Positions 1-64,000 of a DNA stretch of 64,000 nt are shown piece after piece. This DNA comes from Takakia lepidozioides (taxonomy: Eukaryota; Plantae; Bryophyta). Both the position numbers and the translations under genes were made by a program. Under the pieces are notes generated by a model, which was given only the letters and a program-made list of their open reading frames with translations, searched no databases and was not told the DNA's origin. Positions within the stretch are counted from its first letter, which is position 1; each line of letters opens with the position of its first letter. Location: contig CM060732.1 in the NCBI GenBank assembly GCA_030704615.1, positions 22,134,001 to 22,198,000 on the forward strand, written 5' to 3'.

Positions 1-1715
1 TCGCACTAGCTTATGAAGGAAGGGCTGTAATCTCTGCGTGAGAGCCTTAGCAATAATTTTATAGGTTGAATTGAGCAAGGTGATGGGTCTATAATTGGAA
101 ATAATATCTCTATCGCCCTTCTTGAAAATCAAGGTAATGACTCCTTGAGAAAGTTGGGAAGGCATAATGCCCTTATGAATGATGTCGTTTGCCATGAGGA
201 GAAAATCATCTCCCAAATTGCTCCAAAGGGCTTTGAAAAACTCCACGGGAAGTCCATCAAGGCCCGGCGATTTTAGAGAGGGCAGGGCTTCCATGGCATC
301 ACGCAATTCATCTACCGAGAATGGAGCTGATAGAGATAAGGATTCTTCTAGGGATAAAATTTTGGGAACACAGTCCAGGACTCTATGTCTCGAGTCCACA
401 GTGTCCATAGAAATTGTGGGGCGAGCAAAAAGATTGGAGAAATAGGATGCAACCACCGAAGCCATTGCCTTGGGGCTAGAGTGGGATGTGTACATACGAT
501 CTCCGAGAGAGCATATGGAAACAACCGACTGACGCTGTTTAGCCTTCTGAAAAAAATACTCCGACATTTTTTCACCCTTCAATGACCAGGACACCCCCGC
601 TTTCCTTTTCATGTTGAGCTCTTTTAAGGCGCGGAGCTCAACTAGTTCACGCCTGGCCTGGAATAGCAACTGGAAAGTGACAGGGCCCACCAGGTTAGAC
701 TCAACCAACCATTGACAGTGGGCAATTGTTTTCAGAAGGACTTTCTCCTTTCTAGCCCTATCTTCCGCCATCTGTCTAGACAAGTATTGAGCTCTGGATC
801 TGGTAGCAGCGAGCTTAGAAAGAAATATGATTGAAGGAGAGGCAAAAGAATTACCCGCCTCTTGCCATACCCTTCCTAGGTCCTGCACCATAGGAATGGA
901 TTTAAGAAGAGAAGGGTTTAGCTTGAAGAAACCTCTACCCCTGCGGTGGAGCCCAGGCACTTTTAACTGAACTGAGACCAGCGCATGATCGAAGTCAGGT
1001 AAGATAGGGGGAAGGGGGAGTGGAGAGATCCAAGAGGAGGCTGTGGGAGAAGAATAAAACCTGTCCAGCTTGGCCATGCCTAAATCAGGAGGGCGTCTAT
1101 TAATAGACCAAGTGAATCTAAGAGAAGAACGCACAAAACGGAAGGAATCGGAGAGGCCAACTGAAAAGCAAAGACGATCCCAGGCTGCTTGTTCTTCAGT
1201 AGATAAGGACTGAGAGGATGGCCCCAGCCTGTCAGAGAGACATTCTACCATATTAAAATCACCTCCTAGGATCCAGTTATCTACCTCCGGTGCTTTAGAA
1301 TTGATTCATGAATTGAGGCCCAGAAATCTATTCGCTCAGAAGTGGAGTTAGGAGCATATATGTTTATGAAAGCTGAAGCCCCAAAAACAGAGGAGCTAAC
1401 TGTGAAAGCACATTGAGCCCTACCTGGCATCCAAATGTCTATTTTTGAAAAGCAATTACCCAACGAAGGCGAGACAAGGATGGCAGTACCACCTCTAGAG
1501 TCTACTAAAGTCGGGTTCCACCATGCCAGGGTGGAGGGCCAGATTGACTGTCCTAAGGAAACAATTTTCCTTGCAGAAAGCTTATGCTCTTGCAGGAACA
1601 AAATGTTATTAAGAGGTAAAAGAGAGGAGGCCCAATTCCGGATTCTACTTCGTTTGGGCACAGACCCCTCGGAGCCGATTCCTCTAATGTTCCAAGAGTA
1701 TAGATTCCAACTCAT
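1..1715 (-). pseudogene. LINE ORF2 (APE endonuclease plus start of reverse transcriptase) with one frameshift at ~1285-1300
   Basis: First frame gives SWNIRG, LFLQEHK, NIYAPN. After a 1-nt shift the frame reads WILGGDFNMV, KLDRFY, DHALV, FFKLN, KSPGLDGLPVEFF, YRPITLLNSTYKIIAK and stays open to base 1 (hand translation). Confidence 0.93.
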
Positions 1716-3907
1716 GTAGGCTGAACTGCGAAGCCCGTGACTGATTCACGATTTGATGGCTGTAGGGGAGTAACCTCGAACGTCAGTCGGGGGTCGGTAG
1801 GAAGAAGAGAAGGCACCCATTTGTAACCCGATGGAGCCGAGACTTTCAAGGATCCCACAAACGAGATTGTAACACTGTTAGGGCACAAAGAAACGGAGAT
1901 GGAGCAAGGCCAGACAATTCTCTTAAGGACTGAGCTAGATAGCAGAGAATGCATGGAGACCTTCAGAAATTTTGATATAAAAAACAATCCTTCATGCGAG
2001 GTCGCACTATCCGAGCATCTCAAGGCTGGCAGGGAAACTGACCGAGTAACCGTATCAGCAACCAGAACGCAAGCAGAGGAGGGGGAATCTTTACAATAAA
2101 TGAAAAGGGGGATGAGCAAGAGGGGAGGGAATGAGCTCACCGCCGGGGGGGAAGGGATGGCCATATCCAGGGGCACCAAATAGAATGAAGAATTGTCCGA
2201 ATCGGGGATTGGGCCTATGGCCAAATCGTTGGATCCAACATTGTTATCCAAGTTGCGCGAATATTTCTGTGAGGAGCGCAGGGCCTCTACCAAGAGCTTC
2301 CCCGCTTCGTAAGTAGCAGATAAGTAGGGGCGGCTGGCCGCGCTTCCCAATTCGACTGGGACCGAACTACCAGAAATCCACTTTAGCGTTGAGTCGCCAG
2401 CCTGTAGGGAAGAAACGTCAGATAGCTTGATGACTGGCAAAACTTGAACGAAGAATAGATTGCTGTTAGAGGCAGATTGATGCACTCTGGAGCCAAAAAA
2501 CACAGCAGTTTCCGAAGACAACTGAAAAGTGGGAAGAGAAGATGAGAAAATCTCCCTTATTTTGGCAAGAATGAGCTCCAGCTCTTTTCCTTGAGAAAGG
2601 GTGAAAACGTCCTTCTTGGTGATCCAGGCAGAGGCGAACTTGTTGCCTCCCAAGAAGAGCACCGATGGGATCCCGTCCGGGAAGCCGTAGATAATGGGGG
2701 CTATAGTGATTGCCACCGAATGAGCCCCCGCCAGCTGAGAAGCATCAGGCAGATGCACATCTGCAAAAGACTTCAAATGAAGGCAATACGTTGCCAAGCT
2801 CTGAGTCCCGTCCTTGGGGTTGAGCGGAAAGATAGCCGGAATATCATCCGCTGCATAAGGAGTTCCCTGGGACGAAGAAGAGAGCAGGTAAACACGAGGG
2901 TTGATTGTAGCCGGAGAAGCCACGATATTAGGCCGCAATCTTTTGGACGGAGGAGGCAGAGGTGGCGTGACATCCAATCTTTTCCTGGAAGGCCCTGCCA
3001 TAGCATCCTGGGAAGCCAACTGTGCAACATCTGAGGGCTTGGGAGTCATCTGCCTACCATGAAGCTTGGGGCAATCCGCCTTGATGTGCCCCTCTGCGTT
3101 GCAATGAAAGCAAATCACCGGAATATAGACCTCTTTGACTGCCACTGTGACGAAGGAGTTGTCCAATGTCGGCAACTTGAGTGTGGGGATGATGGAGGCC
3201 TCCACTGGCATCATGACCACAATTTGGGGAGCTCCTCCTTCTCTCTGGGCATCAAAGGATAACACTTCATTGTCAATACTTTGAGCGTCAAGATGAATCT
3301 GATCAATAACATTCATTAAGCCAATATACACCCCAAAATGAGCTCCTATCTCAGATCTGAGGTAGTTTCCAGGGAGGTAAGGGAGTGCCAAGACTCTAGG
3401 TCTGCATGTGATACCACCTCTATGTCCCCAGTCAGCTGACCAAGGGAAGATGTGCACACGGCACTTGGAGAGGCAAACGTTGAAGGCAAGTGCAGGAGAG
3501 CTGAACATGAGCGAGTAGAAGTTTCTCCCCAACGCCATACAGAAATGATTAGTTAGACCCGCTTCAGGGCCAAAATGCTCCGTGGCCCAGTTCCTGGCGA
3601 ACAATCTGTTGCGGACCCTGCCAGGGAAGTATAAGAGGACACCTTGCTCAGCAAGCAGCTGGGAATGTTCCTTGATAATTTCCATGTTGAGTTGGAGAAT
3701 GGGTTGAGCCTCTTCCACAGGGGCCACTTCTTTGCTCCAACAAAAGGAAGAACTGATCGGGGAGGCTGGTCGCCTGGGGCCAGCTCCCAACACTCCAGGA
3801 CCATTGGAGGAGGGCCTTCTGCCAATAGAGTTGTTTCTAGCTCTAGGGTGCCTGCGAGCTTCCCCCTTGTGATTGTTGGCACCGAAAGCAGCAGGGACGT
3901 ACGCCAT
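1712..3907 (-). CDS. LINE ORF1 protein (~731 aa from the first ATG at 3907) with CCHC zinc knuckle and long C-terminal extension
   Basis: Uninterrupted ORF (the ORF track starts it at GTG 4066); CFHCNAEGHIKADC matches CX2CX4HX4C; its stop overlaps the ORF2 ATG (ATGA). Confidence 0.88.
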   Translation of the reverse strand: MAYVPAAFGANNHKGEARRHPRARNNSIGRRPSSNGPGVLGAGPRRPASPISSSFCWSKEVAPVEEAQPILQLNMEIIKEHSQLLAEQGVLLYFPGRVRNRLFARNWATEHFGPEAGLTNHFCMALGRNFYSLMFSSPALAFNVCLSKCRVHIFPWSADWGHRGGITCRPRVLALPYLPGNYLRSEIGAHFGVYIGLMNVIDQIHLDAQSIDNEVLSFDAQREGGAPQIVVMMPVEASIIPTLKLPTLDNSFVTVAVKEVYIPVICFHCNAEGHIKADCPKLHGRQMTPKPSDVAQLASQDAMAGPSRKRLDVTPPLPPPSKRLRPNIVASPATINPRVYLLSSSSQGTPYAADDIPAIFPLNPKDGTQSLATYCLHLKSFADVHLPDASQLAGAHSVAITIAPIIYGFPDGIPSVLFLGGNKFASAWITKKDVFTLSQGKELELILAKIREIFSSSLPTFQLSSETAVFFGSRVHQSASNSNLFFVQVLPVIKLSDVSSLQAGDSTLKWISGSSVPVELGSAASRPYLSATYEAGKLLVEALRSSQKYSRNLDNNVGSNDLAIGPIPDSDNSSFYLVPLDMAIPSPPAVSSFPPLLLIPLFIYCKDSPSSACVLVADTVTRSVSLPALRCSDSATSHEGLFFISKFLKVSMHSLLSSSVLKRIVWPCSISVSLCPNSVTISFVGSLKVSAPSGYKWVPSLLPTDPRLTFEVTPLQPSNRESVTGFAVQPT

Positions 3908-4487
3908 GGCAACGAGAGCGAAAGCTGGGGAGATTAACAGGGAAGCCTCGTCAGACTGGGGGATGCACTTGAAAATAAGAAGACCAAAAGAAGGGGACTT
4001 TAGCAAACGACGAAGTGAAACTGGAGCGCAGCAGATAGGAGAAGAGGAAGATGGGCGGGAAGCCACTATTAGGGCTTGGTGAGGAGCTGCGCGGGAGCCC
4101 GATTGGAATTAAGGTGGAGCGTGGGGAATGAAGAGCGCCGGGAAAAGGTGGGGCTTTCCCAGAGAAATAACATTGCTCACTGAGCTGTCAAGACATCAAG
4201 TCCGAGGAGCTGACCAGGGCTGATAAGAATTCATGTTGATGTAAGAAACTGAGGGAAGGAGAATCGGCGAGCATAGAGAAGAGATAGTTCCTAGTGAACG
4301 AACGAGAGAAGGGAGCTGTGAGGGGAGCTTGAAACAGCCAAGTCCAAGCCACAGAGACCGCAAGTTGCGGAGCTCCCCATCGCCGACTCGCCATTTTCAA
4401 GTCGGCCTTTTCATTCTTAATATGATTTAAAGGGCCTCCATCTTTTCTTATTTTTATTTTTTTTAAACGAGTTAGAAAGAACTGCAC

Positions 4488-4683
4488 TAGTGCAGCTGGT
4501 ACCAGACCCTGGCACATACCAGGCTGGTATGACTTTTAAAATTTTGTTTTGTACCATACCAGGCTGTCAAATTTACACATCATTTGATACCAGTACCATA
4601 CTAAGGTAGTTTGAATAATTCAACTAAACCCCAATACCTTTACCCTAGTGGTATCAAAAAACCATGATAGCAGTCCAACACTG
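4488..4683 (-). mobile_element. hAT-like DNA transposon terminus with ATACC/GGTAT subterminal repeats, directly upstream of the LINE
   Basis: Minus strand starts CAGTGTTGGACTGCTATCA at 4683; dense ATACC/GGTAT motifs; 8-nt flank GTGTCTAC fits the hAT nTnnnnAn target consensus; homologous to 53977 onward. No clear partner TIR in the window. Confidence 0.6.
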
Positions 4684-4893
4684 GTAGACACATCTAAAGA
4701 TGAGAAGCCATCTTCAGAGCCCGAGTTTCTCGGGCCCTCGTTTGGGACCTCAGAGTGCGTGGCTCTCTCTTTCTCTCTTCTTCTCTCAGTGTTGCAGCGC
4801 CTGTGAAGGCGGAGATGGGAAGAAGATCCTTGTGACCCTGTTTTAAGTTGTATTTTTAGTTTGTTTTTTCTCTTGTTGTTTCTCTTTGCGCCG

Positions 4894-7377
4894 ATGGAAG
4901 ATGAGGGCACAGGAGGGAGCAACCATCGTCTTCTCTTCTCTGCTGTCTTCGGAGATTCTGAGTCGGATTGCGATGAAGCCGAGGACAATGCTTATGAATA
5001 TCCAACTCGGGTACGTTCAAACAGATAGCTGAATCATTGCGTCTTGATTTGGGCTTAATCCCTTTCTGTGCGCTCATGGTATGCGTGTAAGAAACAAAGC
5101 CGGGGACGGAGGAGAGGCGCCTGTTTGAGCTCCAGATCTTCCTGGGAGGTGTGGTACATACTGAACGAGCGGTTAAGTTCTAAGACTTTTTCTAGAGGAC
5201 CAGACTGCCTATTCAACCAAAACTTTAGAACCTTCAGACATAACAAGGGTCAGTAAATGGATTGATCTTCAGCTTGGCCTGGTGATCATTGTGGCCGAGC
5301 TGTCAGTTCGCATGAGAAAAAAGTAGGTTTGCTAATCAAAGGGGGTCGAAGCAGATGGTGGGAGACGTAATTCAGCTATGGGAGAGTGTGGAGGAGGTGG
5401 AGGGACTATGGCGGTGCAGTCCGTTCCTTACTTCCCAGCAACAGCAGCTGCTGTTGAAGGCCATCGATTCGGGTACTTTTTATGGTCCCCAGTCGTTCAG
5501 CCACAGGAAAGGATGAGTCCTGGCGGGTCCTTTTACAATTTTGGGCTCCTTTGCAGGTTACAGCAGTCAATGGTTTGAAAATGGATGCTCGATGCTTTGC
5601 TGCAGGGGTCTACCTGCAGTTAACCTTTGGACTTCAGCACAGATGGCAATAACGAAAAAAGTGATGTAGACCAACCCAGAACTCCAGGCCATTGGTTTAC
5701 TAGTAAAAAATTTGCTGGATTTTTGGATGTGCAGAGGGATGGTTTTCTGAACCTCTGCACAATCAGGTGCGCAATCCTGATGTTTCTCTGCCCATGAACA
5801 ACTGGAGAGACAAAAAAAGAGAGAGCACGAGAGAGACACTTGAAATATCTTTGCCCCCAAGACTTAAATAGGGTGTAGAGACCATAACAAAAGATTTGTG
5901 ATGACTTTTGGTGTGGTTCTATGGCTTGTTCTTATCAGAGACACTCAATTATCCAAGTGTAGCTATGTCAACTGACCTAAATCGAATCCACCATCAAATA
6001 CCACACACTTGTCAAAGTATCTTGGAACTATTCTAGTCCCATGTAGACTGATAGTATGCTGTAATTTGTCAGAAGAACTGCACTGTCCATACTGTCCAGA
6101 AGATTTATCTAAGTCCCAAATGTATGATAAGAATTTGCAATCATCATACTAATCAGTTGTGATCAAATGCAGGCAATGAGGTTTGGTGAACTTCCCGACT
6201 GGGCCCTCGACCTCTCCTCCCTCATTCACACTGGTATTGTTAACTTCAAGCCACATTGCAATACTTCCTCCATGGGTGACAATTCAAAGAAAGGGGCGGA
6301 TGGTAGGAGCAGGCCTGACTGTCCGTTGCCGTATGAGCTCCTGAGGCGGAAGCCTTTGTTTGACCAGATGATTGTGAACTCTTATCAGCCTGGCGAGGTC
6401 ACATTCTGCAATTTTACACCCTGAATGCATGTGCGTCCCTTTGGTGACTGATGCAAGAAATGGTTTGGAGTGAGCCTGTGTGACCCTGATTGTGCAATTC
6501 TGCTATGCTATTTGTGGGTGGTTAACTCCTGTAGCACGTTTACCCTTCTTGTGATCTACAGGTTTCATGTAGGTCGGGATAAGTAAAGATGTGGATTGTG
6601 ACTTCGAGTGCAGGGAATTGCAGCTCACGTGGACCTACATCGATTTGAAGATGGCATTGCCATCATCTCTTTGGCCTCAGCATGTGTCATGTGCTTCACA
6701 AGCATTCCTGACTCAGGCGGATGTCTGCTATCCAGCAGGGGGAAGAAAGCTGACTCCACCAGTAATGAGGACCTGGACCTAAATCATGGTGATAGGACCT
6801 TGATCGATCAAAATCTGGTACAAGGTGAAGGCAAGCAAGACAACCAGTTTAACAGTCAGTCTCCTCTCCCTGCTGCCAGTAGCCGTCTCTATGAGCACAG
6901 AGGTCCAATCATGTATTAGGAACAATGTTGCAAAAAAAAAGATTATATAGTTGTGTACAGCCTAGCTACCCAGATAGCGTGGATCTGTTGTGTTGGGGAA
7001 GAAAAAGAGGGGGAAGTTGCACTCATATGTTTTTTCCAGTAATTTTGCTGTGAAGCCATGTGTAACAGTGATTTGTGTCAGAGAAGGCAATGATGTGTAC
7101 ATCATAGAGAACTGTTAAGATGGGCAGTGAATGATCTAACCATTTTTACAGGATGATGATGCTAGTCCCTCCATCACTGTGTTGGAATGCAGAAAAGGTG
7201 CCAGTGCTGCTTTTGCCTGGGGACTTGATCGTTATGTCGGGAAAGGCCCGCTACAAGTGGACGCATGAAATCAACCGGGAGGAAAAGCAGCAGATCTGGC
7301 AAGGGCATATGCTCAAGCAAGAGCGTCGCATCTCTGTGACGCTAAGACGCCTCTGCTCACAAGTCGAAGAACATTGA
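4894..7377 (+). CDS. AlkB-family 2OG-Fe(II) dioxygenase (At4g02485-like; named ALKBH7 or ALKBH8B in different schemes)
   Basis: Exons 4894-5010, 5355-5472, 5735-5766, 6173-6397, 6614-6902, 7193-7377 (GT-AG, in phase). Motifs QAMRFGELP, FDQMIVNSYQPGEGIAAHVD (HxD), RYKWTHEI (distal His), RRISVTLR. Confidence 0.92.
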
Positions 7378-7905
7378 CTAAGCAGCTATAGAAGTTGTCT
7401 GTCCTCCAACCACATAAGAAACCCAGGCTGGAAATTTTGTTGAAGTAGTTCTGTAGCTAATGCTAAGGATGATAAGCACACAAAGATGTACAGTCTTTTG
7501 TAGGCATATGCCATTTGTCAAATGACCATGGCCACTTCTGATTCATTGTTCTCCAGTTTTGTGAGTCCCTTAGCAACTGTATCTTTCCATGCTAGAACAG
7601 ATGTCACCATTCTGAGACTGGTTTGATTCTGTACATGTCATGTGGTCATTATATTGGTGTACACAGCTAGATGCCCTTGAGCTCTCCACAACTGTTTACT
7701 GAGAACTGTGCATAGCAAGGATTCCACAGCGGTTTAGTTCACATTTTGAAAACAGCACAGGATGATGAATGGTATTACTGAGTCGTATATGCTACTCACC
7801 AAAAAAGTCAAGAAGGTTATGTGAGTCCATCCCATGATCTCATAGCGTACTTCCCTACTGTGGATCTGTAACAAAAATGTGCATTCTGAGACATTTTTCG
7901 TCAAA

Positions 7906-10595
7906 CTACAGTGTCATTAATGATCTAATAGGGCTACTGGATGATGCCAAGTTCATCTCATCGTTGACCATGGCTACAATGCCTTCAATCCTGACATATC
8001 AAGCAACACGGTTAGTAAAATCGCACAGAAAGTTCATAGAAGGAAACCATCTGGCAGCCAAAAGTCACTTTGCAAGGCAGAGTTGGAGCCTAATTCCTTC
8101 TTCCAGCTGAGCATGCAATCGTGATATATGGAGAAAGTGCTGGGATTGGGAGAAAATACCGTTGCTTGTCAATGTTCACTTCTGATAGCAACGTGGTCAA
8201 ATATACCTGTTCACAGATTGCAAACGAAAGCCCCATTCAGTGCAATACTTATGAATGCCGTACAGAAATCACTCTTTGAGGCTACAATTTGCTGTGACAC
8301 ATGGGAAAGTTGATTCCAACCGTTATGGCGCACCTGCAGTGTTTCGCGCTGGACTTCACCCTTGGATCTCTTCCTTGAAATGTCCTCCACTTCGCTCCAA
8401 TCAAGCTCAAAGAACCCTGACTTTGCCAAAGGGTTTGGCCAACCAGTTGGGAGGCCAGTCCCACCTGCCCTCCCTTCTGCTACAACCTCAGTCGGTCTTG
8501 TCACAGGGTCATCTCCATTCGGTTGCTCCCCTCTTGAGTACATTGGGGCCTTTGGGAAAACAATTGAATGGAATTCTGAAGCTAGGAGCCACTGTACAAG
8601 TAACAACAAGCATTCCTTTAGGACTATAATCTGGCTCTTTCCCCCTCCCGATGGGGATGATACAAAGACCCCAAACATTCCCCTCACCGTAAAGTTTCTC
8701 CCTTTCCTGGACAGTTGACTCACTGGCATTGGTCCAACATACAAAACCTGGGGGTTGCATGCTCTTCACAGGCAAGTTCCAAGTTTTATTCTGAGTGGCT
8801 GTAGTTCATTAGATGCTCTTTTCAAGGTTTAGGCAGTGGGGTAAGGCAGACCAGCACATACCTTGACCTTAAGCTCAGCTTCAAACATGGCCACTACTTC
8901 ATCTGCCAGCAGCTCTGTCCATGTCTCCATATCCACACCATCATGTCAATTGGAAATAAAGAGCACCACATACACACACAGAAAAACACTTTACGACACT
9001 TTACAACATCCAAAGAGCTAATGTCCAAAGAATGCACAACAAACAAGTACTAGAAAACCAATGCCAAGAATGTACTGCCAAAAAACCGACCACCTCTGAA
9101 GGTGAGCTGCCAATACTAGAGTGAAAGAGAGACAGAGAAGTCTACTGAATTTCTACGTGGTAAACCAGTTAAGAAAAGAGGAAACTATGTGTCCCACAGC
9201 TCTGGAGCAGTGTTGAGGTAAGTTGAGCTCACCAAATGCATCAAGAGGAAGAGTTGCAAAGACAGGCACTCCAGCTCCATCCCCTGCATCACCCTGCACT
9301 GAGGGCTCATTGGAGAACTCAATCAAAGGTCCCTCACCAGAGCCTTTCATATACGTTCTCATTGACTTGGTTGCTTGCATCATTATACAGACAGCTTTAA
9401 CCTGCACCAAAAGTAGATGGCCAGGGATTTCAGAGAAGAAAGTAGGAGGTCCAACAGAGACTCCAGTTACTCAATTCCACTAATGACGTCACTTCAACTG
9501 CCATTACAAAAATAGAATATGATGGTAACCTGGACAATGATACATGCCCATGTAGTGTGGTCTGGTATTGTGTGATTCAGTATTTGTGCCCTTCCAAACC
9601 TTACTCTGTCTGCAATGTGGTTAGCGTGGGCAAGAATGGTCCACCAGATTAGAGCTTGCTTACCAAATCACCATAGCCGGAGAGAAGCTGCTCCAAATAC
9701 GCCTTCTACAAGAGATGCAAAATGGCAGAAAGAGCCAATGTTGTGAATCCTCACACAGCCACACACACTTACTGTCTTCAAAGATATATGGATGTGTTGG
9801 AAAAGAAACCAACTGAATACTGAAACAAATGGAGGAACACAGCTAGCACTGGCCCTCCCTGCGACCCCACATCCCTCTATCTTATTCTGCCTCCAGGTGA
9901 GTAGTCCATGGTCACAAGGCTGCAGCAATACTACATCTTTTCTCTCACAGCTGTGATCCCTTTCTCTATCTCACTCTGCCTTAGTGCAAGTGTATTTGCT
10001 CCGCCCAAACCGGGTCTAGGGCCACAAGGCTACAGCAAACATCGTCTTATGAGTACATTCTGTATCAGTGCCAGTAACAACCCAAGGGTCTGACAAAGAG
10101 AGGGCATTGAGCTGCGCACAATTTTGTGAGACTTGGCCCCATAATGACATAGGCAATGAGCACCTGCTGACGTCGCAGCTTGGCCTGTGCCTTATTGCAG
10201 ATGCCCTCCATGTCCTGCAGCACTCCCAGATCCATTGATCCCATGTACCTGCCAGAAATTAGTGACTCAGCTTTCTCCTTGACCCTTTCAGCATCTTCTT
10301 CTTACTCACTACTGTGTGTACAGTGCGCTAAAACCACCAAGGACAACAATTGTGTGCGCGATAACTGAAGAAACCCTAGCAGGTCACACATGATAAGCAT
10401 TGGGAGGTGGGAGAGAAAGAGAGGAGATTAAAAGAACCTGTGAGAGAGAAAAACGTTCACAAGTGACGAGGCGGCCGTAACGGCAGCTGCAGATGCCGCT
10501 GCCCAGGCAGCCCGCTGTGCATGCAGCGCTGCCCATGCATTCCGCACCTGGCGCTGTGCTGCAGGCCGCCACAGCCTTCCAACCCCTCCACTCAT
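7906..10595 (-). CDS. Conserved uncharacterised land-plant protein (8 exons)
   Basis: In-phase exons: MSGGVGRLWRPAAQRQVRNAW...; YMGSMDLGVLQDM...; KAYLEQLLSGYGDL; VKAV...KSMRTYMKG...GDGAGVPVF; ELLADEVVAMFEAELKVK; WLLASEF...RETLQ; VYLTTLLSEVNID; IEGIVAMVNDEM...stop at 7906. Matches a remembered unnamed plant family. Confidence 0.8.
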
Positions 10596-16593: not shown

Positions 16594-18881
16594 CTTGACC
16601 GAGGCCTCTCTTCCACTTGGCTTTTCCCTAAGTGGTTTCCTGTATGCAGGCTTCAAGACAGCTTGAAACCACCTTCACTTTTCCTTAGCATGCCACAAGG
16701 CCTCTCTGTATGTACCGTCCGGCCAGAATGAATATTGTGCGTGCTAGATGCCCATATAGTACGTCTTCAAAAGAAGTGCATACAAGACATGAGGTCCGTT
16801 GAAGGTCCGTTGTCTACAAGTACGTCAAATGTTAATCATCACGTGAAATCAGTTGCTTCAAAAATGCTGCAAAAGTGACCGGGGCTCCAGAGAAGATGAA
16901 GGCCTCCTGCATAGTTTACCTAGGTGATGAGATGATGGAGGCTGGCGTTATCAAAAAGTGAGAGTGATCTCGATTAAGACCAGTTGGTGATTCTGTTCAA
17001 TGTATGTACGTTGTAAATCAAAACCAGGCTGCACTTTTTCCTTGTCACAGGAACTAGAATAATTGTGCAGGTAATGGAGCTCGCCCTGACACTCAGAGTG
17101 ATTGCTGAGCTCAGCTCCCTTCCACGGTTTGGCCTGGCCGCAGTATGATTTGAAACACAGAAGATTCATCAAGTCCAGCACTAACTACTTAGATACTGAT
17201 CTGGTATCACACAGTGAGAGATAGAGATCTACAGAGGTGTCCTCCAACTTGCTTGCAATTGGTCGCATGCAGGAGAAAGAGAGATTTTAAATCGTTCAAA
17301 ACACGTGTTAGGTCCCGACTAAGTAGGGACAACTAGTATAATACAGAAAGAAAGAGAGATATATCACGACTTTACTTTTCTGCAATTGTGCGCACAGAAA
17401 AGAGAGGGGAGAGTATGTGGAGTTTATTAACAAAATAACTGTGTCATCTGAGTAACACAGTTACCGCTGTTTATATACAGAAAGAGAGCGGGCTCAGACA
17501 GACAAAGGGACTCGGGAAACGTTACATTCATGCAGTCGGTCGCATGCGTGCGTGTACACTGCAAAATCCTCAAGTGTAGTTTGTCCACCAGTTGCATCTA
17601 GATGAACGCGGTGGCTCAAAGCTGCCTGTGTGGTTGGCAACTGACGTGGTCTGATCGCTCGAAACTAGATCTGTCACGTTCACTTCCAAACGCTAGAGAG
17701 ACGCCGGGACGGTCACAAATCTCAGGACGCACAGCTGCACAGATCTGCACAAGTACAAGGAGCACAACCCGTTCCCGAGCAGACTCCTTCAAGATGGTGC
17801 ACTGAGAGCTGGTCGCGTGAGTCCAAGCCCCTACTGCACACTTCCCTCTCCAGTGAGCGGTAGAGAGCAGACTATGAAGGGGCTATGAAGTCGTAATAGG
17901 TAGAGCACTTTAAACCACAGACACCGCGACCATGCAAGAGATGAGAACCAGCGGGCCAAGCGCAAAGATTCAGTCTCCACAACCTGCAGCCTCCCTCCAT
18001 CACTACAGACTTCCGAATACAATACTCTCACAAAACAATCCAATTGCGGAGCGATGGCGACAAGATAGAGATCGTGGCGACAGGGTGACTGAGACGCAGA
18101 GACAGAGACAGAGAGAGGTGGGGGCCCGCGATGGATGCTCACAGCTGCAACACCATCGCCATTGCGATCGTGCACAGTACCTTCTTTGCTTTCTTTGTTT
18201 CCAAAACGCAACACGCTCTCTCACTACCTGCACTAGCTTCCGCCTCGCACTTGCCGTCCATGTACTTTGTTCATCTGATACCACAGAATTCATCCACCGT
18301 CCAAGCGGTACACATCCACTCTCCTTGATGCAGAAGTACATCCGTCGCCGGTGTCGGTTGCTATATATTCATCCACCATCCTTCTTGTGTTCGTTTCAGG
18401 GCACAGTTCATCCATGGTCCACCCGGAGTACAGTATTCGATATCGTAGTTTCACCGTATTCATTCACCATCATTCGTCGCAGAGCACCATATTCATCGTT
18501 ATGAGGTACAGTATTTCATCTCGGATGTATCATTTTCATCTATTAAGAACTTTGGTGCCGCTCATCTACTGTTGGAAGATGAGTAACGGATGAATGTACC
18601 GTCCTCTGTTCATTAATTGAGGATACTGATGGATGTTTCGGCCAAATATTTGTCACTTTTGATGTGACTCAGTCCCGGCTTTATGGATGGCAATCTACGG
18701 ATGGAGTCCATTCTTCATCTGCCTTCTTTTGATTTTCCCAAAATGTTTTTTGAGATCTACAATGGATAAAGTATCATACCGTCGTTGATTTTTTATTTTC
18801 ATATATTTTTTTCTTGGGAAAAGGGGACGGTGAAATAGACTCATACCAGATTCCATTTCTGGAATTGCTATTAACTTTCTA

Positions 18882-39537: not shown

Positions 39538-39936
39538 CTCCAGCTGCCACAGCGTTGAGAACGTCACCCAGATCCCTACACTCTCCCTCCCACGAACAAT
39601 CAATCTCTCTCCCTACTGGAACTTCCTTCCTTCCTCCCAACCACCACCCAACCTCTATCTTACTGCTGTCATGTCTAGAGAAGAAAAACCCAACACCCAA
39701 CTGAGATATTGGACTGGAAATAAAATCCCCAACATCAGTCGGGGTTCTCATCGGCATTGAAAAAAGCCTCTTTCAATTCAGTTGATCTCACTTGGGTCGT
39801 TCTCCGTCCACGCACCCACTTTCTCTTTCGTCCGTCAGGATCTCGCAAATAACTTCGTTTTGTTCTCGACCGACATATTTTCGCGGGGCTGCTGTGATCC
39901 TGCAGCAAACGTTCTCGTGTTGTCCTCAAGCTCACC

Positions 39937-53545: not shown

Positions 53546-53976
53546 TCTGACTGACAAGAACTGGATACAGCTTAGGCTGGCATGACCTTCGCTGTAACCA
53601 TCCACACTGAGGAGAGAAGCAGCAGTATTAGGGTATTGAAAAGAAAGTCCAGCTGAGAAACCAAAACAGCGAGCAGAGTTTTATCAAACAAGGAGAGTGT
53701 GGAGCAAATCCAAGGCCAGCAACAAACAGCATCTAGGAAAGATTGTGCAGGTCCGCAGGCAGTGAAGCAGAAGAGCGAGGTCGACAAGGAGAGAGACGAT
53801 GACAGGGAGAACCGTTCCAAAAGCCCGCCCGTTCTAAGTTTGAATCTACTCACATTGGATCGTCGATTCCCTCAACGGTCTTGCCGATCTGACGTCAGGG
53901 AAACGCTGTCCCGCATACGAGTAAAATGGATGATTCACATCCCATGCAATATCCATCCATCCACCCTACTTTAAAC

Positions 53977-54170
53977 CAGTGTTGGTCTGGTATCACGTTT
54001 AGGACATACCAACACGGGTACGAAGTACAAAATGTTCATACCGTCTCGTATGTATAATGGAAAATGTACTTTTTCCTCCATACGGGTATGAATACACACT
54101 ATCATGATATACCAGCTGGTCTCAGGTATTAATACTGGTATCATTCAAACGCCATTTCTAATTAGACATT
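53977..54170 (+). mobile_element. hAT-like terminus with ATACC/GGTAT subterminal repeats, upstream of the second LINE
   Basis: CAGTGTTGGTCTGGTATCA is 17/19 identical to the terminus at 4683 (-); 8-nt flank CTTTAAAC fits nTnnnnAn. Confidence 0.6.
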
Positions 54171-54926
54171 TATCAGATATCAAGTATCTAGAAGAAAAAC
54201 AAATTAAAAAAAACCTTATAAAGTCCAATCCAATGTATATATAATATACACACAATACACATATAATTTGAAAATATGTGTACACTACTAATATCACAAG
54301 TAGAATATATGAAGAATGGAGGACAGAGCGATATAGGAGCTCCGCAGTTTGCGATCAGAGAGAGAGAGACCCCCAACGGTACTCTCTTCGTCTCTCTCGT
54401 TACCCTCAGCGATCGGTTCTGGTTCAACAACTCTCACAGTTCATTTGGTTTGGTATTCCTTCTCTATTCCTTGCCTTCTTTGCATCGACTATAGTTGATT
54501 TTGCATGCTGGAAGGCAATAGCCCTTGTGGTGAAGAGACACCATAATTTACGCTTCCTTCGGGAGGCGTCTATATTTATTTATTTATTTTTGATTTTGCA
54601 CTTGCATTTCATCATTCTTATACTAAATCATCACTTTCACATCTAAGTTCATTGTAAGCCCTTCATCGACCTGGCCCTCTATCTTAACTCAATCTCAAGT
54701 ATGCGGCGCCATTCATCAGCTTCAGGCTTCCCACGCCCCAGCTGTCGCCGTCAACTTCAAGTCCTATAATTTCACCCCTGCCACTTGGTCGTGGGCTCCC
54801 CCAACCACCATCCCCGCCATTAATCTACCTCCACTATCTACATTCGCACTCTCGTCCTCGGCTCATTTGATCTCTTCCTCGCTTTGATCTCATCCTCTCT
54901 TAGCTCGCTCTTCACTCTCCCTCATT

Positions 54927-56790
54927 ATGGGCCTGCTCAGCTCATCCCAGCTCAAGCACAATAGCAAAACGTGGAAGCGCCGCTCCCTCTCAGGACCTTC
55001 TAGAATTCCCCACTCGTACTCTCCCCCCGAGCCTTCTTCAGAAACTAACTTCAATTCTGGCCCATCAGGCTCAATCTAGCCTCCCATTTTGCTCGGAGGT
55101 GATGGAGCCCACTCCTACCAGGTAGCCGCTCCGGCCCGAATTGGGATAGCAACGGAAATCCAGCCCTTCATGGATCTGCCTCCCCAAGTTGATCAGCTGG
55201 ACCACATCACTAATAATGTATTGGAGGAGCAAGAGGCGATGAACGGAAACTTTCCAATGATCTCCATGAATATCGCAGACCTGCACAAACGAGTGACAAA
55301 CGTGGGAGAATGCAATCCTAGTTCACTTCCCTGGAAGAAAGGTCATTCGGGCTTATGTGAGAGGCTGGCCCGCCATTCGTCACCTGGGAGGGTCAGGTGA
55401 ATTGAAACAACACTTTTGCAATGCAAAAGGTAGGGGTTTCTTCTCTATTGTCTTTGAATCCCAGGAGGCTGCTGCTCAGGCTTTGAACTTCAATCCCCAC
55501 CTCAAACGTCAGAGAGAGAGAAGACTCCGGCCAAAGCCGGCGTAACTAAGAGCCACTTCGCCTCCCAGCTATTGCCCGTATCTTTCATTGGTCCTCCAAG
55601 ATGGATAACAAGAATGGTAAGTTATGGGGGCCCATGATAGTTTCTGTTCCTTTCATTCCAGATCAGTACCTGTTTAATCTCCCATATATTGCGAAACATT
55701 TCGGGTTGTATCTTCAAGGCTGCATATCAATTTTTGATCCCTTCATGAGCACAGATAACATCAGGAAGGACCCAGCATGGAAATCAGCAACAATTGCTTC
55801 CAGGATAAATGATTTTGGCAATGTCAAATTTGTTATTATGATGCCCAATGAAGACACTCTCCCGCCCTTCGTAAAGTTGCCCAATTGATGACGAAGGCAA
55901 CTATTACACCATCGGGCTTTTGGAAGATACATCATCTCTAGCTTGCTTCAATTGCGGCAAAATAGGTCACATCAAAGCTGAATGCAAGGAAGGGAAAAGG
56001 AAGAGAGTGGGAGGCAGGACCCGCTCTCCCTCCCCCCCACTTATCATCCACTCGGGAGGTTTTATCCCACCCATGGTGCCAATATCTGCAGGTGTGAATG
56101 GGACACCTATCTCTGCAGGTGACCCTGCAAATCTGCTACAATCAAAAGCCCAAAGATGTTGCAGGATTGGAGCCACAGTACACCAGCCCTATACTTCTAG
56201 TACCTAAAAAGCTTAGAAATGCCCCAGACCCTATGAGATTGGAATCTGCAGAAAAGAAAACAACATGGAACCACTACAACAGATTGCGGCTTTCATGATT
56301 GCCATGGGTGTGCAGTCATGGCAGATTTGTGGCAGAAATGCCATTTGCAGTCGTAAATGCCTTTGAAGTCGTAAAGCAAGTTTGGGGAAGGCGTATATGC
56401 GACTGCATGACTCCGGACTCTACTCAACACAAAGACAAATGGATTCCTAGGGGGAGAGGGGGGGGTTTGCATTCACCCACCCCCTCCCCCTCGCGGACAC
56501 GGGTATCCTCCCCAAGGTGCCCCCACAGCCCTCTAAATCTAGACCTTCCTTCCGCACTACCACCTGGCCGGCACCACTAAAGTTTCTTGGGGATCCTTCT
56601 TGGAGATTTTTCTGGGTCTCAGCTGCAACCCTTCAACACACATTCTGGCATTAATGGAAGAAGCAGATATCTATGGTTCTCATCCACTTCTGGGCGCAAT
56701 ATGGGTAAAGAAAAATGTTCTCTCGGAGCCAAGGGGAGCCACCAAACTAAAGCCCAGATACCATGATACCCATACTAATGTCTTCACCAT
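54927..56790 (+). pseudogene. Decayed LINE ORF1, diverged relative of the ORF1 at 1712-3907; interrupted by CACTA sequence
   Basis: Across stops and frameshifts: ILVHFPGRKVIRAYVRGW, HFCNAKGRGFFSIVF, RIFHWS, VPFIPDQYL, IAKHFGLY, FVIMMP...VKLP, CFNCGKIGHIKAEC, AIWVKKNV, all colinear with the left ORF1. Confidence 0.85.
56272..56420. mobile_element. Orphan CACTA terminus fragment
   Basis: CACTACAACAGAT at 56272 followed by AGTCATG/AGTCGTA/ATGACT repeats; no closing TAGTG. Confidence 0.55.
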
Positions 56791-59700
56791 CACTACAAGA
56801 GATGAGCGTTTTTAGGACTACGGCTTTGGCGGAGTCATAGAAACTGCACTAGGTACATGACTACAGAGCGCTGAAATGCATTACAGTTTTAGTTTTATGA
56901 CTTTGTAGTAATGGATATCACTACATGACTCCGGAAAGTTAGGGAGCATTGGTCAAACATTGTTGACCATGATGACAGGGATGGTTTATATGACTAGTGT
57001 GATATGTTTGACTACACGTGGACGACGTTTCATGGAATCTTCTGACTCCATGACTGAAGATGGTTTCATAGCTCTATTTATACGACTACATCACTACACG
57101 TGTCATTTTGAAGGCACATATAATGCAAATAAGGTTGCCCATTAGGTTTAAAAAAGTTAAAAAATTACTAATAAGGTTGCCCATTAGTGTAATCATGAAC
57201 AGAAAGGAGGGCTGGGACTTGGCGTTTTTTTGTCTCCTGCGCCACACCACATAGCTGAGGGATGGAACGCGATGATAGCATGATATGCAGGGGCATGGGA
57301 TGGAGGCGTTGAGCAAATGATGCACGAAGGAGAAAAGGAGGAGGAGACGAGACGAGGAGAAGCGAGCTCGCCGTTCTTGGGAGAGTCAGCTTGGTCTTAG
57401 CAATCGTGTTTCAATCTCTGACTACTCATCTACGCCGTAGTGGTTCGATCTCACAGACCAATCCGACATTACCTGACTACAGAAACCAGCAGCACACACA
57501 AGAGGTCATCGGTCAAATCCTCCATAGGTCAGGACAGGTCAAGGACAATGTGGTAGGGCACCTTCTTCTTCAACCTATTTCAGCCTGTGTTGCCCTCTCA
57601 TCAGACTCGGCCGCAAGATGCATATTGAATTTTGTAAGTTAGGTCGTTGGGTAGATCTCTGGTGGTTTGGAGTGACTTTGGCAAGTTACTGCCAGTGTGG
57701 CAGCAGGGAAGTATCCAAAAACATATAATAGAGGTGAGGAGAAGCTTTGGGGTGAACACTTTCCGACCCCAATGGTGGGACAATGGAGACAAAAAGGCGA
57801 ATGCTTGTTGGACTACAGAGAGAAGCAGATGCATTTCAGATTGTGATAAGTAGGGTTGGGGTGTTTTGGGGAAGAACTCCACACCAGTATGGTTGGGGTG
57901 TTTGCTGGTAGAATTGTAGGTTGTCAGAGGCATGGATAGCTGAAGGAGCAAGGATAGAGTGTGGGTCCAGATTCATCCAAGAGGGCTGGATTTCAAGCTC
58001 CACATTACCTATGATTCCCTGTGGAATGATAGTTACAAGAAACCTACATGGGTAGATGGTCAACTAGAAGCGGCATGCTGTACTATATGTCATTATTGTA
58101 CTATATGTCATTCCAGAGACTGTCATTGTTGGTCCATGTGTTTTACAACAATGCTATCAATATAAGACTTCTGGTTCGCATTGGAAGCTCAATCCCTGTA
58201 AGTTCATTGTGTGTGAAGCTCAAACTTGTGATTTGAAGGATCTTGTAGCCAAGTTCATTCAACCGGAAAGGAAAAATTCTGAAAGCTCCCAAATTTGATG
58301 TGGGCAAGCTTATGGAGGTAAGACTTAGCTTCCCTTCTCTAATGTAAGTGTTGGATAAGTTTCATTTAGTGTCGACCTTCACTGCATATATTGGCTCTTT
58401 TCTTGGCTGGTTTCATATTTTCTTGGCTGGTATGCTGTTGGTTGGCTTCTTTCATTTCACGTGTGTAGTGGAAGGGGAGAAGTACTTTCCTAAGTTCTGC
58501 TGCAACAATGTCTTTTTCCAGCCTAGATGTTTTCGATGGATACAAATTGAAGTGCTTCGAATGTTGCTGCAATACTATAATAAAGTGGAGGGTGTTGAAT
58601 GCAGTTGGCCTTGCTTCGTGCAGGCATAATCCAGGGAAATGTGGACATAGCTGAAACCCCATGATAGCATTTCCAGAGGACGGTGTGGATGGCCTCACAA
58701 TCCAGCATGCAAAATCCATGACAATGTGGAGATGGTTGAATGGGCAAACAGGTTAAGTGGCGAACAAGCCACATCACTGGTACATAGTTGCATGCTTACA
58801 TAGTACATGAAAGCGTACTATATGTCATTCCCGAAATTGACCATGTTGGTCCATGTATTTTACAACAATGCTATCAATAAAAGACCAATGGTTCGCATTG
58901 GAAACTCTATCCCCGTAAGTGGCTTGTGCGTGATGCTCAAACTTGCGATTTGAAGGATCTTATATCCCAGTTCATTGCAGAGGTGATTGGAAAAGACATT
59001 GAGAAGGCAACAGCCGTTATCTATAATCTACAGATCCCCTTCAATTTGATGTGGGAAAGCCGGCTGGCTGGAGGTCTAGTCTCACTTTCACTCATCTAAT
59101 GTCAGTGTTGTATCCATTGCAATGTGGAGATGTTTGAAACAACATTGGAGCATTTCCAGAGGATGGTCTGGATGGCCTTTCGTGGCGTGTGCCGAATCCA
59201 TGGCAAGAAAACATTGCAGGCAGAACCCATGGCAATGGTACCAGCACACGTTGGTCCAAAGCCAATTGCAACAACAAATGAATAAAAGGGTGTTGAAAGG
59301 AAAACACTCCATAATTGATCATAAAATCCAGTGTCCAAGCATGATATCTTAATGGGAATGCGAAGGGAGTGTTACCACCTTAAACTATCATGCATGGTCT
59401 ATAACTGGAGTGCACAAATCGCGCATATCTAATCTTCATCATCCTCATCTATGTCTGGTCACTACATGTATCACTGTCTTCATCACAGACTTGATCTTGT
59501 CCAAGGGTTGGCTGAACATCATCACCACGTATACAGGGTGCTCGGAGGTACAAGGAGGCCACCTGCTCTGGAGTAACCGGTACCGCTCGGCTGCATGTTG
59601 GGCCATCAGTAACCAGAGTCTCCTCTAGTCTTTGTGGGGCTAACAATCATTCCACTTCCGCCACATCATCATTATCAATTGATATGTCGCAGACCACTCT

Positions 59701-62700
59701 ATGTGCTTGGGGGCTCTTCTCCAGGACGACTTTCCACCCCGGCTCCTTCACACAATCAGAAAAAAAACACTTGATCAACATGGCCAGGAAACACAAAAGG
59801 TTGCTCAGAAGGTGGAAGCATACGGTTAAAATTGACAAGTGTGAAGCCAGCATCATCCTGCTTCATTGACATAGGTTGACGACCCACGTGACTCGCCCGT
59901 ACCCACGAACACAAAAACACTATAGGCTGTGTTTGGCCATAGTCAATTTGCAAAATCTCCCTTATAAGACCCACATATCTTGTAGGTTCCTCCATGTCAT
60001 TGCCTGAATTGTTGGTAATGGGCTGGTGCTGAAAAACAGATGAGACTCCACAATCAAAAGACACCATACTTGTTGTGTTCATGCCGGGGGATGTAACCCT
60101 GTAATGGTTACCATACGTTGTCATACTCTTGAATGACAGGGCAGTAAATGATGGAGGCCTTGAAAGATCCAGTAATTCCTCACGTGTTGTAGGATCAAGC
60201 ACATCTGATTGAATTGAGAGATGATCCCGTACACCTTGAGGGAGCCAAACAGCAAATGGAGGACAAGGATGCAAATCAGGAGGGTACTGAATTGTCGTGG
60301 GATTGCTCATGCCTTCCAGCCCTTGCTCCTCACGAAACAAGCGTCGTCTGGCTTCTATCCGTGTGGACTCTGCTTCATATATCTTGTCACAATCCGAGGG
60401 TCAGCCAGGAGATTGATAGAGGTGGCGTGGGAGATTTGAAAAGACGCCATATGTCAACTAATGATAAATGACTAAAACTTGGAAATCTGAATGTCAATGA
60501 AGTAGATTTCTTACCCCAACATGACTGACAGACGAGGATGGTTCTGAATGATGTACTCATGTACAATATCACACAAGTCATTCAATTTTCGGGCTTTAGA
60601 ATTTCCTTCCACAACTTCACGTTCCACAGATTCTGCCTCATCTGCATCCCACACCCTTCGTACACTTCCATCAAATCCTGCCATATACTCTGTGCAAAAA
60701 CCCAATGCTTCTTCAAATTGGTATCCTTCTGCCATGCTCCCCTCGGGCCTTGTCATGTTTCTTACGTAGCTCTTCATATCTTTCATTGCCCGCTCCATGG
60801 GGTACATCCAACGAGATGCTACGGACCCGCATAAGTACAACTCATCCACTAGGTGAACAACCAGATGTGTCATCACATCAAAAAATGATGGTGGGAACTC
60901 CTTCTCTATAAGACACAGAGTGAGAACTGCTTCAGTTCTCAATTCCTCATACTCTACAGGATTCACCACTTTTGCACACAACTTCTTAAATACACGACAT
61001 ACTCGCAAAATGGCCCTTCGAGGACCACTTGGCATGAGCCCACGGATAGCAAGCGGTATAATTTGCTGCATGAGCACATGATAGTCATGTGATTTCATGC
61101 CAGACAACTTCTTCTTCACCACATGCTTTTTGAAAGCTGATGCGTAGCCTATTGGCACTTTCTAGTTCTGCACAATCTCCAGAAAGACTTGTAACTCAGC
61201 CTCAGTGAGGACATAAGGGGCAGGAGGCATAATTAACGTATCTGCTCTGTCAGGATCACGTTGTAGCCACAATTCCGGGTGCATCCCAAGTAGCTCCAAA
61301 TCACGGCGAACTTTCAATGTGTCTTTCTCACCAAAGATAGTTTTAATAATATTTTCAGCCAAGTTCTTCTCGCAATGCATTGCGTCAAACGTGTGGCGGA
61401 TGAGGAGACCCTACAAAATGAACACATAAGCAATTGAGCATTTACTCATCACAATTTAAACAGAAAACGCAAAAATGTACACAGCCAATTTAAAGGCCAT
61501 GAAGGAATTACCTCCCAATAAGGTAAGACATATAAAATTGACAATCGCTTAACTCCATGAGTTTTTGCTGGGTCTGTCTTGCTATCTGGCGTCCCTCCGT
61601 TTTCCACCCATGGAGTGCGAGTTGTTGCAAGCTCCTTGATTTGTGTTCCAGTCTGCGTTTTTGGAGGAGTTCCATGCTCAGTAGCGCCATTGAACATTCT
61701 TGACCTTCTATATGTATGATTGCGGGCCAAAAATCTTCGGTGGCCTAGGAAAACAATTTTTCCACATGTGTGTAAGTGCTGTGAAGTCACCCCGGGTCCA
61801 CAAGCTGGACAACCAGCATAACCTTTCGTCACTTGATCTGAGAGCAAGCCATATGCAGGGTAGTCATGGATTGACCACATCAACACTGCCCTCAGTGTGA
61901 ATTCGCGTTGACCACGAGGACGGGAAACATCATGAGCTGCAATCCCTCTCCATAGTTCCAGTAGCTCTTCCACTAGGGGCATCAGGTAAACATCTACGTT
62001 GTCCGAGGTAACAGACTCCTTACCAGGAATCAGTAGCGCTAACATGACAAAGAACTTTTTGGTCATTAACCACGGAGGCAGATTGTAATTGACCAAGAGA
62101 ACGGGCCATGTGCTCCAACTTGTGGATTGAGCTCCGTAGGGATTTACACCGTCTAAGGCCAATCCAAACCGCAAAGATCGTGGCTCTGCAGAAAAATCCT
62201 CAAATGTGGTGTCAATGTATCTCCATGCTTTGCTATCAGCTGGATGTCGAACCAACCCATCCTGGCTCTTATGTCTGTCGTGCCATGTCATGAGGTTAGC
62301 GATCGATTTACATCGGTACATACGTTTCAACCTTGGAATGACAGGGAAGTGTCGTAATACTTTCTTAGGCACACTTCCACGACCTGGAATGTAACGGGAA
62401 CTGTGGCACACTGGGAAAATGTCTACATTCTCATACTCCCCACGGAAGAGTACACAACCACGCTCACAGGCATGAATCATGGTGTACTGCAATCCCATCT
62501 TGGCAATCATGGTTTTTGCTTCATAGTGAGTTTTCGGCAATGAATTCTCTTTAGGCAAAAAACTCTTACGCAACAATCCCAGAAGCTCATCCACAAATGC
62601 ATTGGTGCACTTGTGGGTAGTGCATGCGTTCAGCAACGTCAAAGTTGTTTGCAGCCGGCTGATGGAGCACCATTCAAAAAGTGAACATTGCGACTGTCGA

Positions 62701-64000
62701 AAGAGTTTATCATACTCGGGATCAACGTGCAGGTGAGCATTCTCATCAAATTCATTGTCTCCGGAATCATCGAGATCATCGTCATGATCGGCAAATGTGT
62801 GATCGGTTCCACCATGAATGAGGTCCTCTCTGTTTGCATTTGCAAAGAGAAATGCTTCCTGCAATGCACGCTGCATTTCTACCTCTAATCCACCACTCTC
62901 ATCTGCGTTCTCTGTGACATTGGGCTCCCGCTGTGTCGCAGGGCCTTCGTCTTCATCATCTGAATATTCACATCCCTGCATCCCAATAGTCATCTTGTGA
63001 GTGGACCAACAACGATATGACATTTGTTCATATTATGACATAGGAGGCACGGTGACGTTGCAGTGATGCAGTCATATTTACGTATGTATCTTATGAATAT
63101 ACACCCAATCAAAACACGACATTTGTAACCATTGAAGTCATAGTTGCAGTCACTTACTTAGTCATATATGACTACATGACTACACATGACCAATGAAAAC
63201 ACGACATGTGCATTAATTAAAGTGATAACGGAAGTGGCGTAGTCATAGTCACGTCTGTATCTTATGACTTCTTGACTACAATCACCCAACGAAATGTCGA
63301 CATATGGAGAAGAGGATCGTTGCATTCAAAAATTCAAACTAAAGTGCTGAAGGGAAAGTGGCGATCTTACCGGAAGATAACAGCGTTGGAGAAGATGATC
63401 CCTCCCATGTATCATGTAATGATTCCTCACTGTTTCCAACAACAGTACTTTTTCTCCATGACACTCATCGCAGTTGCATAGCATTTTTGTATGCCCATTC
63501 CTTGTGGCATAAACTTCTTCCATTCGCCATAGACGGTCATCTATTCTACGCCTACGCATCTGGTCGCCACCTGCACTGTACATGCTTTGAACGACACCCC
63601 TTCCCTCTTTGCATGCTACGCGCAGTGCTTTGTCTCTAGTTTTGCACCAGCTGCCAATGTGCTATTTCTATATCTATAGTATACTATAAGTATCGTTTCT
63701 GAGTGTCCATGGTGAAGCGGAAGGTCTTCGAAGTGACAGTCCCTCTCACTGAGTACGAGAAGTTCCGAGAGCGCCGGATTGCTGCCATAAAGGAGGTAGA
63801 AGCAACGTTCAAGCAGTTGATAGATGGGTGAGTTTAGTTTCTGACTTTGGATACCCACCCACTAAACTTGCGATTCGCCTTATCCTCTAACCTTCCTACA
63901 ACGATCATAAGCTTCATAGCACAAATGGGGGCGAGTAGCTGCGACTTGTACAAACAGAGAGGCAAACAACATGCAGTGAGTGACGATGAGGTTTGAGGAG
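56791..64000 (-). mobile_element. CACTA (En/Spm) DNA transposon; the other end lies beyond the window
   Basis: TIR CACTACAAGAGAT at 56791 (3-nt flank CAT); ATGACT/AGTCAT subterminal repeats at 56810-57100 and 63060-63280; TnpD-like transposase. Confidence 0.92.
59647..63583 (-). pseudogene. CACTA TnpD-like transposase (transposase-associated, Transposase_21, DUF4218, DUF4216 regions), disrupted
   Basis: CNCDEC...HG; LRHFPVIPRL, HPADSKAW, GLALDGVNP, STWPV...YNLPP, DYPAYG; HxxDAMHCEKN; GMKSHDYHVL, FFDVMTHL...RWMYPMER...EGSM; EQPFVFP...QVFF. In-frame TAG at 61162-61164 and a frameshift in the A-run at ~59760. Confidence 0.93.

Follow-up and report, generated by a model that had tools for sequence, protein, structure and literature searches.

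Does a lineage of long interspersed nuclear elements (LINEs) in a plant settle preferentially inside the ends of DNA transposons? The question is raised by a 64,000-nt stretch of the moss Takakia lepidozioides (assembly GCA_030704615.1, contig CM060732.1, positions 22,134,001 to 22,198,000; hereafter the window), in which two homologous LINE open reading frames (ORFs) each lie shortly behind a terminus of a hAT transposon. The interpretation favored here, to which an even chance is given, is that a plant L1-type lineage inserts into hAT subtermini in the style of Tx1, with the filled unit perhaps copied later. The juxtaposition of genuine hAT ends with diverged L1 ORF1s is itself real and probably non-random.

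Identity of the hAT termini

Two homologous termini were located where a first-pass annotation, made from the sequence alone, had placed them. The termini at 4683 (minus strand) and 53977 (plus strand) were identical at 17 of 19 positions and at 26 of 35 in an ungapped comparison, and the window contained two matches to the terminus against a chance expectation of 0.04. Their 8-nt flanks, GTGTCTAC and CTTTAAAC, had also been read correctly, and both were compatible with nTnnnnAn, judged from the one side present per copy. This pattern is the target consensus that defines the Ac family of hAT transposons, and it was found in the flanks of the wider family as well as in both window flanks. A position-weight scan across the 64 kb, with a matrix built from outside copies, detected no hAT end of the same family beyond these two. 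Within the window, neither element contained a partner end whose 8-bp flank matched, the number of second hAT ends enclosing a LINE, as in a cargo-type hAT, was zero within the window, and no hAT transposase was found there. The possibility that the two termini are the ends of one 49-kb element was ruled out, since both face outward and their flanks agree as a duplication at only four of eight positions; a complete short hAT with its duplication preceding either LINE was ruled out by the scan for ends and flanks.

Outside the window, the exact 19-mer occurred in at least 120 metagenome loci, in JGI sets that are presumably peat-moss samples. It stood at both ends of complete elements 147-813 bp, 3.8 kb, and 5.5 kb long, which had short terminal inverted repeats starting with CAG/TAG and were bounded by perfect or near-perfect 8-bp duplications (perfect in L020, L034, L050, L094, L108, L115, and L123). 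The target consensus was GTnnnnAC, with G, T, A, and C at positions 1, 2, 7, and 8 in 42, 50, 52, and 48 of the 64 distinct flanks, respectively. The 5.5-kb element, L050, contained a decayed transposase fragment matching ZBED1/DAYSLEEPER/DUF659 clusters at 0.92-0.93; Pfam and PDB searches of the decayed transposase pieces gave no match. The shared 19-mer, the 8-bp duplications, and the transposase remnant show that the window termini are genuine hAT ends, as the annotation had held.

Among contigs from the same organism as the window, seven left the window sequence at 4685 with mixed flanks, of which the two readable ones were again nTnnnnAC; these sibling ends shared about 35 nt with the left terminus (to 4649) and differed past 4685. 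Because the flanks of the loose-end contigs and of the window fit nTnnnnAC, the outer junctions of the hAT ends were made by the transposase, and a hAT end that is merely the RNA-copied leader of a LINE is therefore disfavored. Both hAT ends lie within about 0.1-0.2 kb of apparent host gene 5' ends that face away from them (window 4700-5100 and 53560-53960).

Layout between terminus and ORF1

Read inward from each terminus, the two elements showed the same order: ATACC/GGTAT repeats over some 170-190 nt, then A-rich DNA at about 215-245 nt, a 21-nt motif, and a pyrimidine-rich leader, with ORF1 starting 776 and 950 nt from the terminus. The repeats and A-rich stretches of this layout had been recognized in the first-pass annotation, and dense ATACC/GGTAT clusters were found in the window only at these two places, plus a weak one near 19.3 kb. 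For the motif that the annotation had also reported before ORF1, the result was mixed: the two copies were identical at 18 of 21 positions, a value reached in 4 of 300 shuffles in an ungapped test, but the gapped test was not significant (35 of 300 shuffles), so that the shared motif is a moderate signal. It was absent from all outside hAT loci compared; a single bacterial match was taken as chance. The motif regions gave only weak RNA folds, none of them common to both elements, and no Rfam RNA was found in the window.

Comparison with the outside elements indicated how much of each hAT is present. The left 190-215 nt were colinear with short hAT elements until about 20-35 nt short of their far end, and the right 185 nt matched the first part of a 700-bp hAT type; the remainder of the hAT was missing from the window in both cases, as a splitting LINE would predict. 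Past the terminal repeat, the left end scored 57 and 56 against L083 and L094 and the right end 68 against L085, compared with 33 for left against right. In shuffled controls, the best-of-all means were 42 and 39 and the maxima 60 (left) and 51 (right), which makes the assignment of the right end firmer than that of the left. The resemblance of the two window ends to different outside end types points to two separate junction events. Contigs were cut at 4440-4467, in the A-run where the left junction may lie.

Table 1. Coordinates of the paired hAT and LINE features and of the interrupting element within the window
Feature	Position	Strand	Remarks
Left LINE ORF2	1..1715	-	AP-type endonuclease, start of reverse transcriptase; one frameshift near 1284-1305; runs off base 1
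Left LINE ORF1	1712..3907	-	731 aa, open; CCHC knuckle at aa 265-281; C-terminal region of about 430 aa without family match
21-nt motif, left copy	4356..4376	-	Candidate LINE 5' promoter or target motif
Left A-rich stretch	4441..4464	-	Follows TTT; candidate LINE endonuclease site and putative hAT/LINE junction
Perfect 14-nt palindrome	4482..4495	.	At fading edge of hAT-like sequence; from sequence
Left hAT subterminal repeats	4496..4664	-	Run in parallel with the short elements L083/L094/L020 until about 30 nt short of their far end
Left hAT terminal inverted repeat	4665..4683	-	Position-weight scan; contig loose ends at 4685 and 4649
Left 8-nt target flank	4684..4691	-	GTGTCTAC; agrees with family consensus GTnnnnAC
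Right 8-nt target flank	53969..53976	+	CTTTAAAC
Right hAT terminal inverted repeat	53977..53995	+	Identical to commonest metagenome end
Right hAT subterminal repeats	53996..54165	+	Closest to L085/L108 end type
Right A-rich stretch	54190..54213	+	Candidate junction
21-nt motif, right copy	54336..54356	+
Right ORF1 homolog	54927..56790	+	Decayed, in several frames, start predicted; CCHC knuckle near 55940-55990; C-terminal domain common to L001
CACTA element	56791..64000	.	Interrupts right ORF1 (CACTA end 56791; Tnp2 transposase 61449-63023, minus); outside the pairing

The LINE sequences and their relatives

The annotation had described two LINEs, which held fully for the left element only. 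ORF1 and ORF2 are both present on the left, whereas on the right a CACTA transposon cuts a decayed ORF1 at 56791; no ORF2 (endonuclease or reverse transcriptase [RT]) of the right element was found in the window, and because only this frameshifted ORF1 is present, the designation of the right element as a LINE comes solely from its ORF1 homology. The interrupting CACTA element has subterminal repeats and extends past the window edge. That the two ORF1 proteins are homologous yet strongly diverged was borne out (28-41% identity, E = 4.6e-21).

From its domains, the left element has the anatomy of an L1-type LINE, with a zinc-knuckle ORF1 followed by an ORF2 with an apurinic/apyrimidinic (AP) endonuclease-type domain and the start of an RT. 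The ATG of ORF2 overlaps the stop of ORF1, the RT match covers only the first 38 residues (E = 0.006), and the 3' end of the LINE falls to the left of base 1. In ORF1, no match to DUF4283 was found, and the C-terminal part (aa ~345-731; window 1715-2870, minus) had no Pfam, Atlas, or fold match; an Atlas search of aa 345-560 likewise returned no match, and the single-sequence fold of ORF1 had a predicted local distance difference test score of 30. Each piece of a broken ORF was searched on its own, with stops written as X in the scripts. Most differences between the window copy and the contigs occurred in the window copy alone and changed an amino acid; they therefore show decay and permit no test of selection.

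In a tree of the region preceding the RT, from which rows aligned over ≤250 residues (P0027, P0028, P0032, and P0041) were excluded, the left ORF2 grouped at 98/98, on a long branch, with L002, the Riccia sorocarpa proteins P0025 and P0031, and two unlabelled proteins; eight other unlabelled proteins fell apart from this clade. On this placement, the left LINE is best called a plant L1, and the grouping with plant L1s, albeit on a long branch, argues against Tx1 membership. The term Tx1-like used in the first-pass annotation is thus one of behavior rather than of demonstrated ancestry. L002, at 1466-8703 of its locus, is a complete stand-alone plant L1 with a poly-A tail, a 17-nt target duplication, and a DUF4283 ORF1. 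A diverged contig about 81% identical to ORF2 was free of gaps across 623 and 253 nt, which suggests selection on the reading frame and hence spread by retrotransposition. Among the distant ORF2 relatives, none carried this hAT terminus.

A full-length search for ORF1 homologs, limited by length, gave no match; a representative search yielded one true ORF1 relative, P0009, the remainder being knuckle-only or unrelated, and a profile search contributed a single further sequence, P0034, which comes from the contig of P0009. No ORF1 was found in the metagenome contigs. The only outside ORF1 relative, L001, was 48-62% identical to the right copy and shared its C-terminal domain (score of 94 versus 31, 0 of 300 shuffles); the left C-terminal part was only weakly similar to this domain (28 of 300 shuffles). 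Two further elements were seen in L001. A lone TA-CAGTGAACCCTC terminus of Tc1/pogo appearance at 2961-2980 lies about 590 nt before the sister ORF1 and points into it, with no partner found nearby, and the lineage may therefore nest in other DNA transposons too. A 731-bp element with 30-nt inverted ends (GGG...CCC) at 5081-5811 is inserted in the sister ORF1.

Copy number and chance expectation

Contig depth, a poor proxy for copy number, was summed and compared with that of unique flanking DNA; X1-X3 represent a single sample, possibly that from which the assembly was made. Depth was about 5-6x over ORF1 and 5-7x over the leader, then 6-10x at 4603, 18-20x at 4612, 25-42x at 4628, and 39-53x over 4489-4675. 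From this profile, the terminus is common, while the left LINE and the subterminal DNA specific to its own hAT end occur in similar numbers (~5-10 copies each). There was no 5' fall-off of depth along the 4.3 kb of the left LINE, and no cluster at the LINE 5' end among the loose ends listed.

With 200-5000 hAT ends placed uniformly, 0.00002-0.015 such windows would be expected genome-wide, in a model whose inputs are assumptions and in which one fifth of windows are taken to hold two LINE 5' ends. Two adjacencies are thus very unlikely under uniform placement. Because both sites adjoin apparent host gene starts, the estimate may be too low, and a shared preference for promoters could raise the chance expectation by a large, unknown factor.

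Proposed mechanism and rival explanations

In the proposed sequence of events, a hAT would arrive first, leaving its nTnnnnAC flank, and an L1 would then insert by target-primed reverse transcription, in sense orientation, in A-rich DNA just inside one hAT end, about 0.2-0.3 kb from the terminus. The LINE would split the hAT, so that beyond the LINE 3' tail one would expect the hAT remainder and the other copy of the 8-bp target duplication, with a distal end reading CCAACACTG followed by GTGTCTAC or CTTTAAAC. Two old LINE lineages, two insertions, and two hAT end types would be involved. The LINE would gain a landing site that is harmless, near promoters, and multicopy, and the filled hAT may later have been copied as a unit with transposase supplied in trans. 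We infer the order of events, the position of the junction, the targeting, and the hitchhiking. A stronger version is quite improbable: a dual-mode L1 that lives only inside hAT ends, retrotransposes into empty hATs with its ORFs under selection, and also moves as DNA with the hAT transposase, in at least two deep lineages of an early-diverging moss.

Targeting is supported by the position of the only two hAT ends of the family in 64 kb, both of which precede an ORF1 with equal polarity and at similar distance, and by the largely empty state of the hAT family elsewhere, as expected of a target. Several findings weigh on the other side. There are two cases, one of them an ORF1 only, and no 3' junction, poly-A tail, or LINE duplication was seen, both 3' junctions lying beyond the window edges; no common sequence could be aligned at both hAT/LINE junctions. 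Behind 47 distinct metagenome ends with ≥2 kb of interior, no LINE (ORF1 or ORF2) was found, the sole match being an RT fragment 3.4 kb away, so that a LINE is not a usual part of this hAT family. The first-pass annotation predicted a hAT terminus in the 5' flank of other ORF1 homologs, which failed in L001: no CAGTGTTGG end was present within 3.5 kb upstream of its ORF1, and the match of 17 nt at 2676, 0.9 kb upstream, to one hAT subterminus was not significant (E = 0.14). The association therefore stands at 2/2 in the window and 0/1 outside. Composite copying would agree just as well with the flat depth and with a LINE as numerous as its own hAT end. Finally, a search of the literature other than subscription papers and Repbase Reports turned up neither a plant L1 targeting a DNA transposon nor any LINE with a hAT target, in agreement with the annotation, which knew of no such pairing in plants. 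A strictly co-diverging LINE/hAT pair, as first envisaged, is not supported, given the 47 LINE-free loci, L001, and the closeness of the two window ends to different outside types.

Ordinary untargeted nesting is the likeliest of the rivals, though itself rather unlikely: hAT and LINE may both favor open, promoter-near DNA, with the L1 endonuclease favoring A-rich hAT interiors in a genome of 46% GC, or short hATs may have inserted beside the 5' ends of LINEs, with later loss of the far hAT ends, so that the two cases are a selected coincidence. The proximity of both ends to apparent host gene 5' ends fits this explanation, as do the abundance of the terminus (~40-50x single-copy depth over 4489-4675), the bare 5' flank of L001, and the LINE-free outside ends; the left 190 nt, moreover, cover nearly a whole short hAT and finish like the shortened end of L094. 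However, neither case has a far end with a matching duplication, and polarity, orientation, and spacing are repeated twice for homologous ORF1s, for which strong local enrichment of both elements would be needed. No loose-end cluster marks the LINE 5' end among the loose ends listed, despite contig breaks at the A-run.

A composite DNA transposon, in which hAT ends enclose the LINE as cargo and spread mainly by cut-and-paste with transposase in trans, is improbable. It would account for the similar depth of the LINE body, the 5' region, and the copy-specific subterminal DNA at 4603, and for the lack of a 5' truncation gradient over 4.3 kb, with the reservation that contig depth measures copy number poorly. 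Two ORF1 lineages at 28-41% identity, or ORF2 relatives free of gaps at 81%, are not what passive cargo would maintain, and the two window ends are of different types; the 3' junctions, by which targeting and a composite could be told apart, lie outside the window. LINEs do acquire new 5' ends, and a hAT end turned into the LINE's own leader and copied through RNA would explain the similar spacing from terminus to ORF1. Such capture is nevertheless very improbable, given that both outer flanks and two from loose ends carry the nTnnnnAC signature of the hAT transposase, that the terminus is exact, and that the two hAT parts are of different types.

Other features of the window

Elsewhere in the window, inverted-repeat pairs with 32-, 26-, and 46-nt arms at 18880-19576 and 20079-20452 resemble small non-autonomous DNA elements. 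Tandem arrays occur at 30485-30828 (period of 38 nt), 22632-23133 (249 nt), and 43359-43712 (186 nt). A 52-nt inverted pair is dispersed over 31 kb (10012-10063 and 41070-41121), and pieces of a local duplication, at 33961-35205 and 38936-39543, lie 4.3-5 kb apart. By their motifs, 15550-16057 and 45921-47666 (minus) are presumably an exon of an amino-acid permease and exon 1 of a chloroplast CRM/CAF1-like splicing factor, respectively.

Comparison with known systems

If insertion of the L1 lineage into hAT subtermini is correct, it would represent an independent origin of transposon-into-transposon targeting, with the first hAT target as far as the literature searched, a plant endonuclease with a natural site preference, and a testable case of retroelement hitchhiking on cut-and-paste transposition; if mere nesting is correct, the pairing is ordinary. 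Among the closest known systems, the L1s of seed-free plants (L002, Riccia P0025 and P0031) share with the moss element a CCHC ORF1, an AP-endonuclease/RT ORF2, and membership of one clade. L002, however, stands alone with its own poly-A tail and duplication, and the moss ORF1 has a long C-terminal part and no DUF4283 match. The moss-associated metagenome hATs (L004-L123) share the 19-mer, the subterminal repeats, and the 8-bp GTnnnnAC duplication, and differ in that none of the 47 distinct ends with ≥2 kb of interior is followed by a LINE.

LINEs inside DNA transposons are known, as the first-pass annotation had noted for Xenopus Tx1L, but the precedent is not confined to Xenopus and extends to crocodilians (PMC4494074). 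Most target-specific LINE families reported belong to early-branched groups and to the Tx1 and R1 groups, those with an AP-type endonuclease mostly to the animal Tx1 and R1 clades (PMC4640811), and target specificity has been taken to require that >20% of copies have the same flanking target, always at a fixed position (PMC4494074). Tx1L of Xenopus laevis inserts in Tx1D, a non-autonomous piggyBac family (PMC4494074, PMC1950540, PMC6719617). The likeness lies in a two-ORF AP-endonuclease LINE within a non-autonomous DNA transposon; in contrast, the host is piggyBac rather than hAT, Tx1L has a single proven target sequence, and the moss LINE groups with plant L1s. In crocodilians, Tx1-Mar prefers Mariner-N4_AMi, and Tx1-9_AMi favors a site in Harbinger families about 300 bp in from their 5' end, for which hitchhiking was considered (PMC4494074). 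These two belong to the animal Tx1 clade and have Harbinger or Mariner targets, and their preference was shown on many copies, whereas the moss system comprises two copies at two diverged hAT end types. The geometry of Tx1-9_AMi, about 300 bp inside a transposon end, is nonetheless that of the moss elements, and by this analogy the system may work like Tx1-9_AMi, an explanation of a known kind in a new host and a new target.

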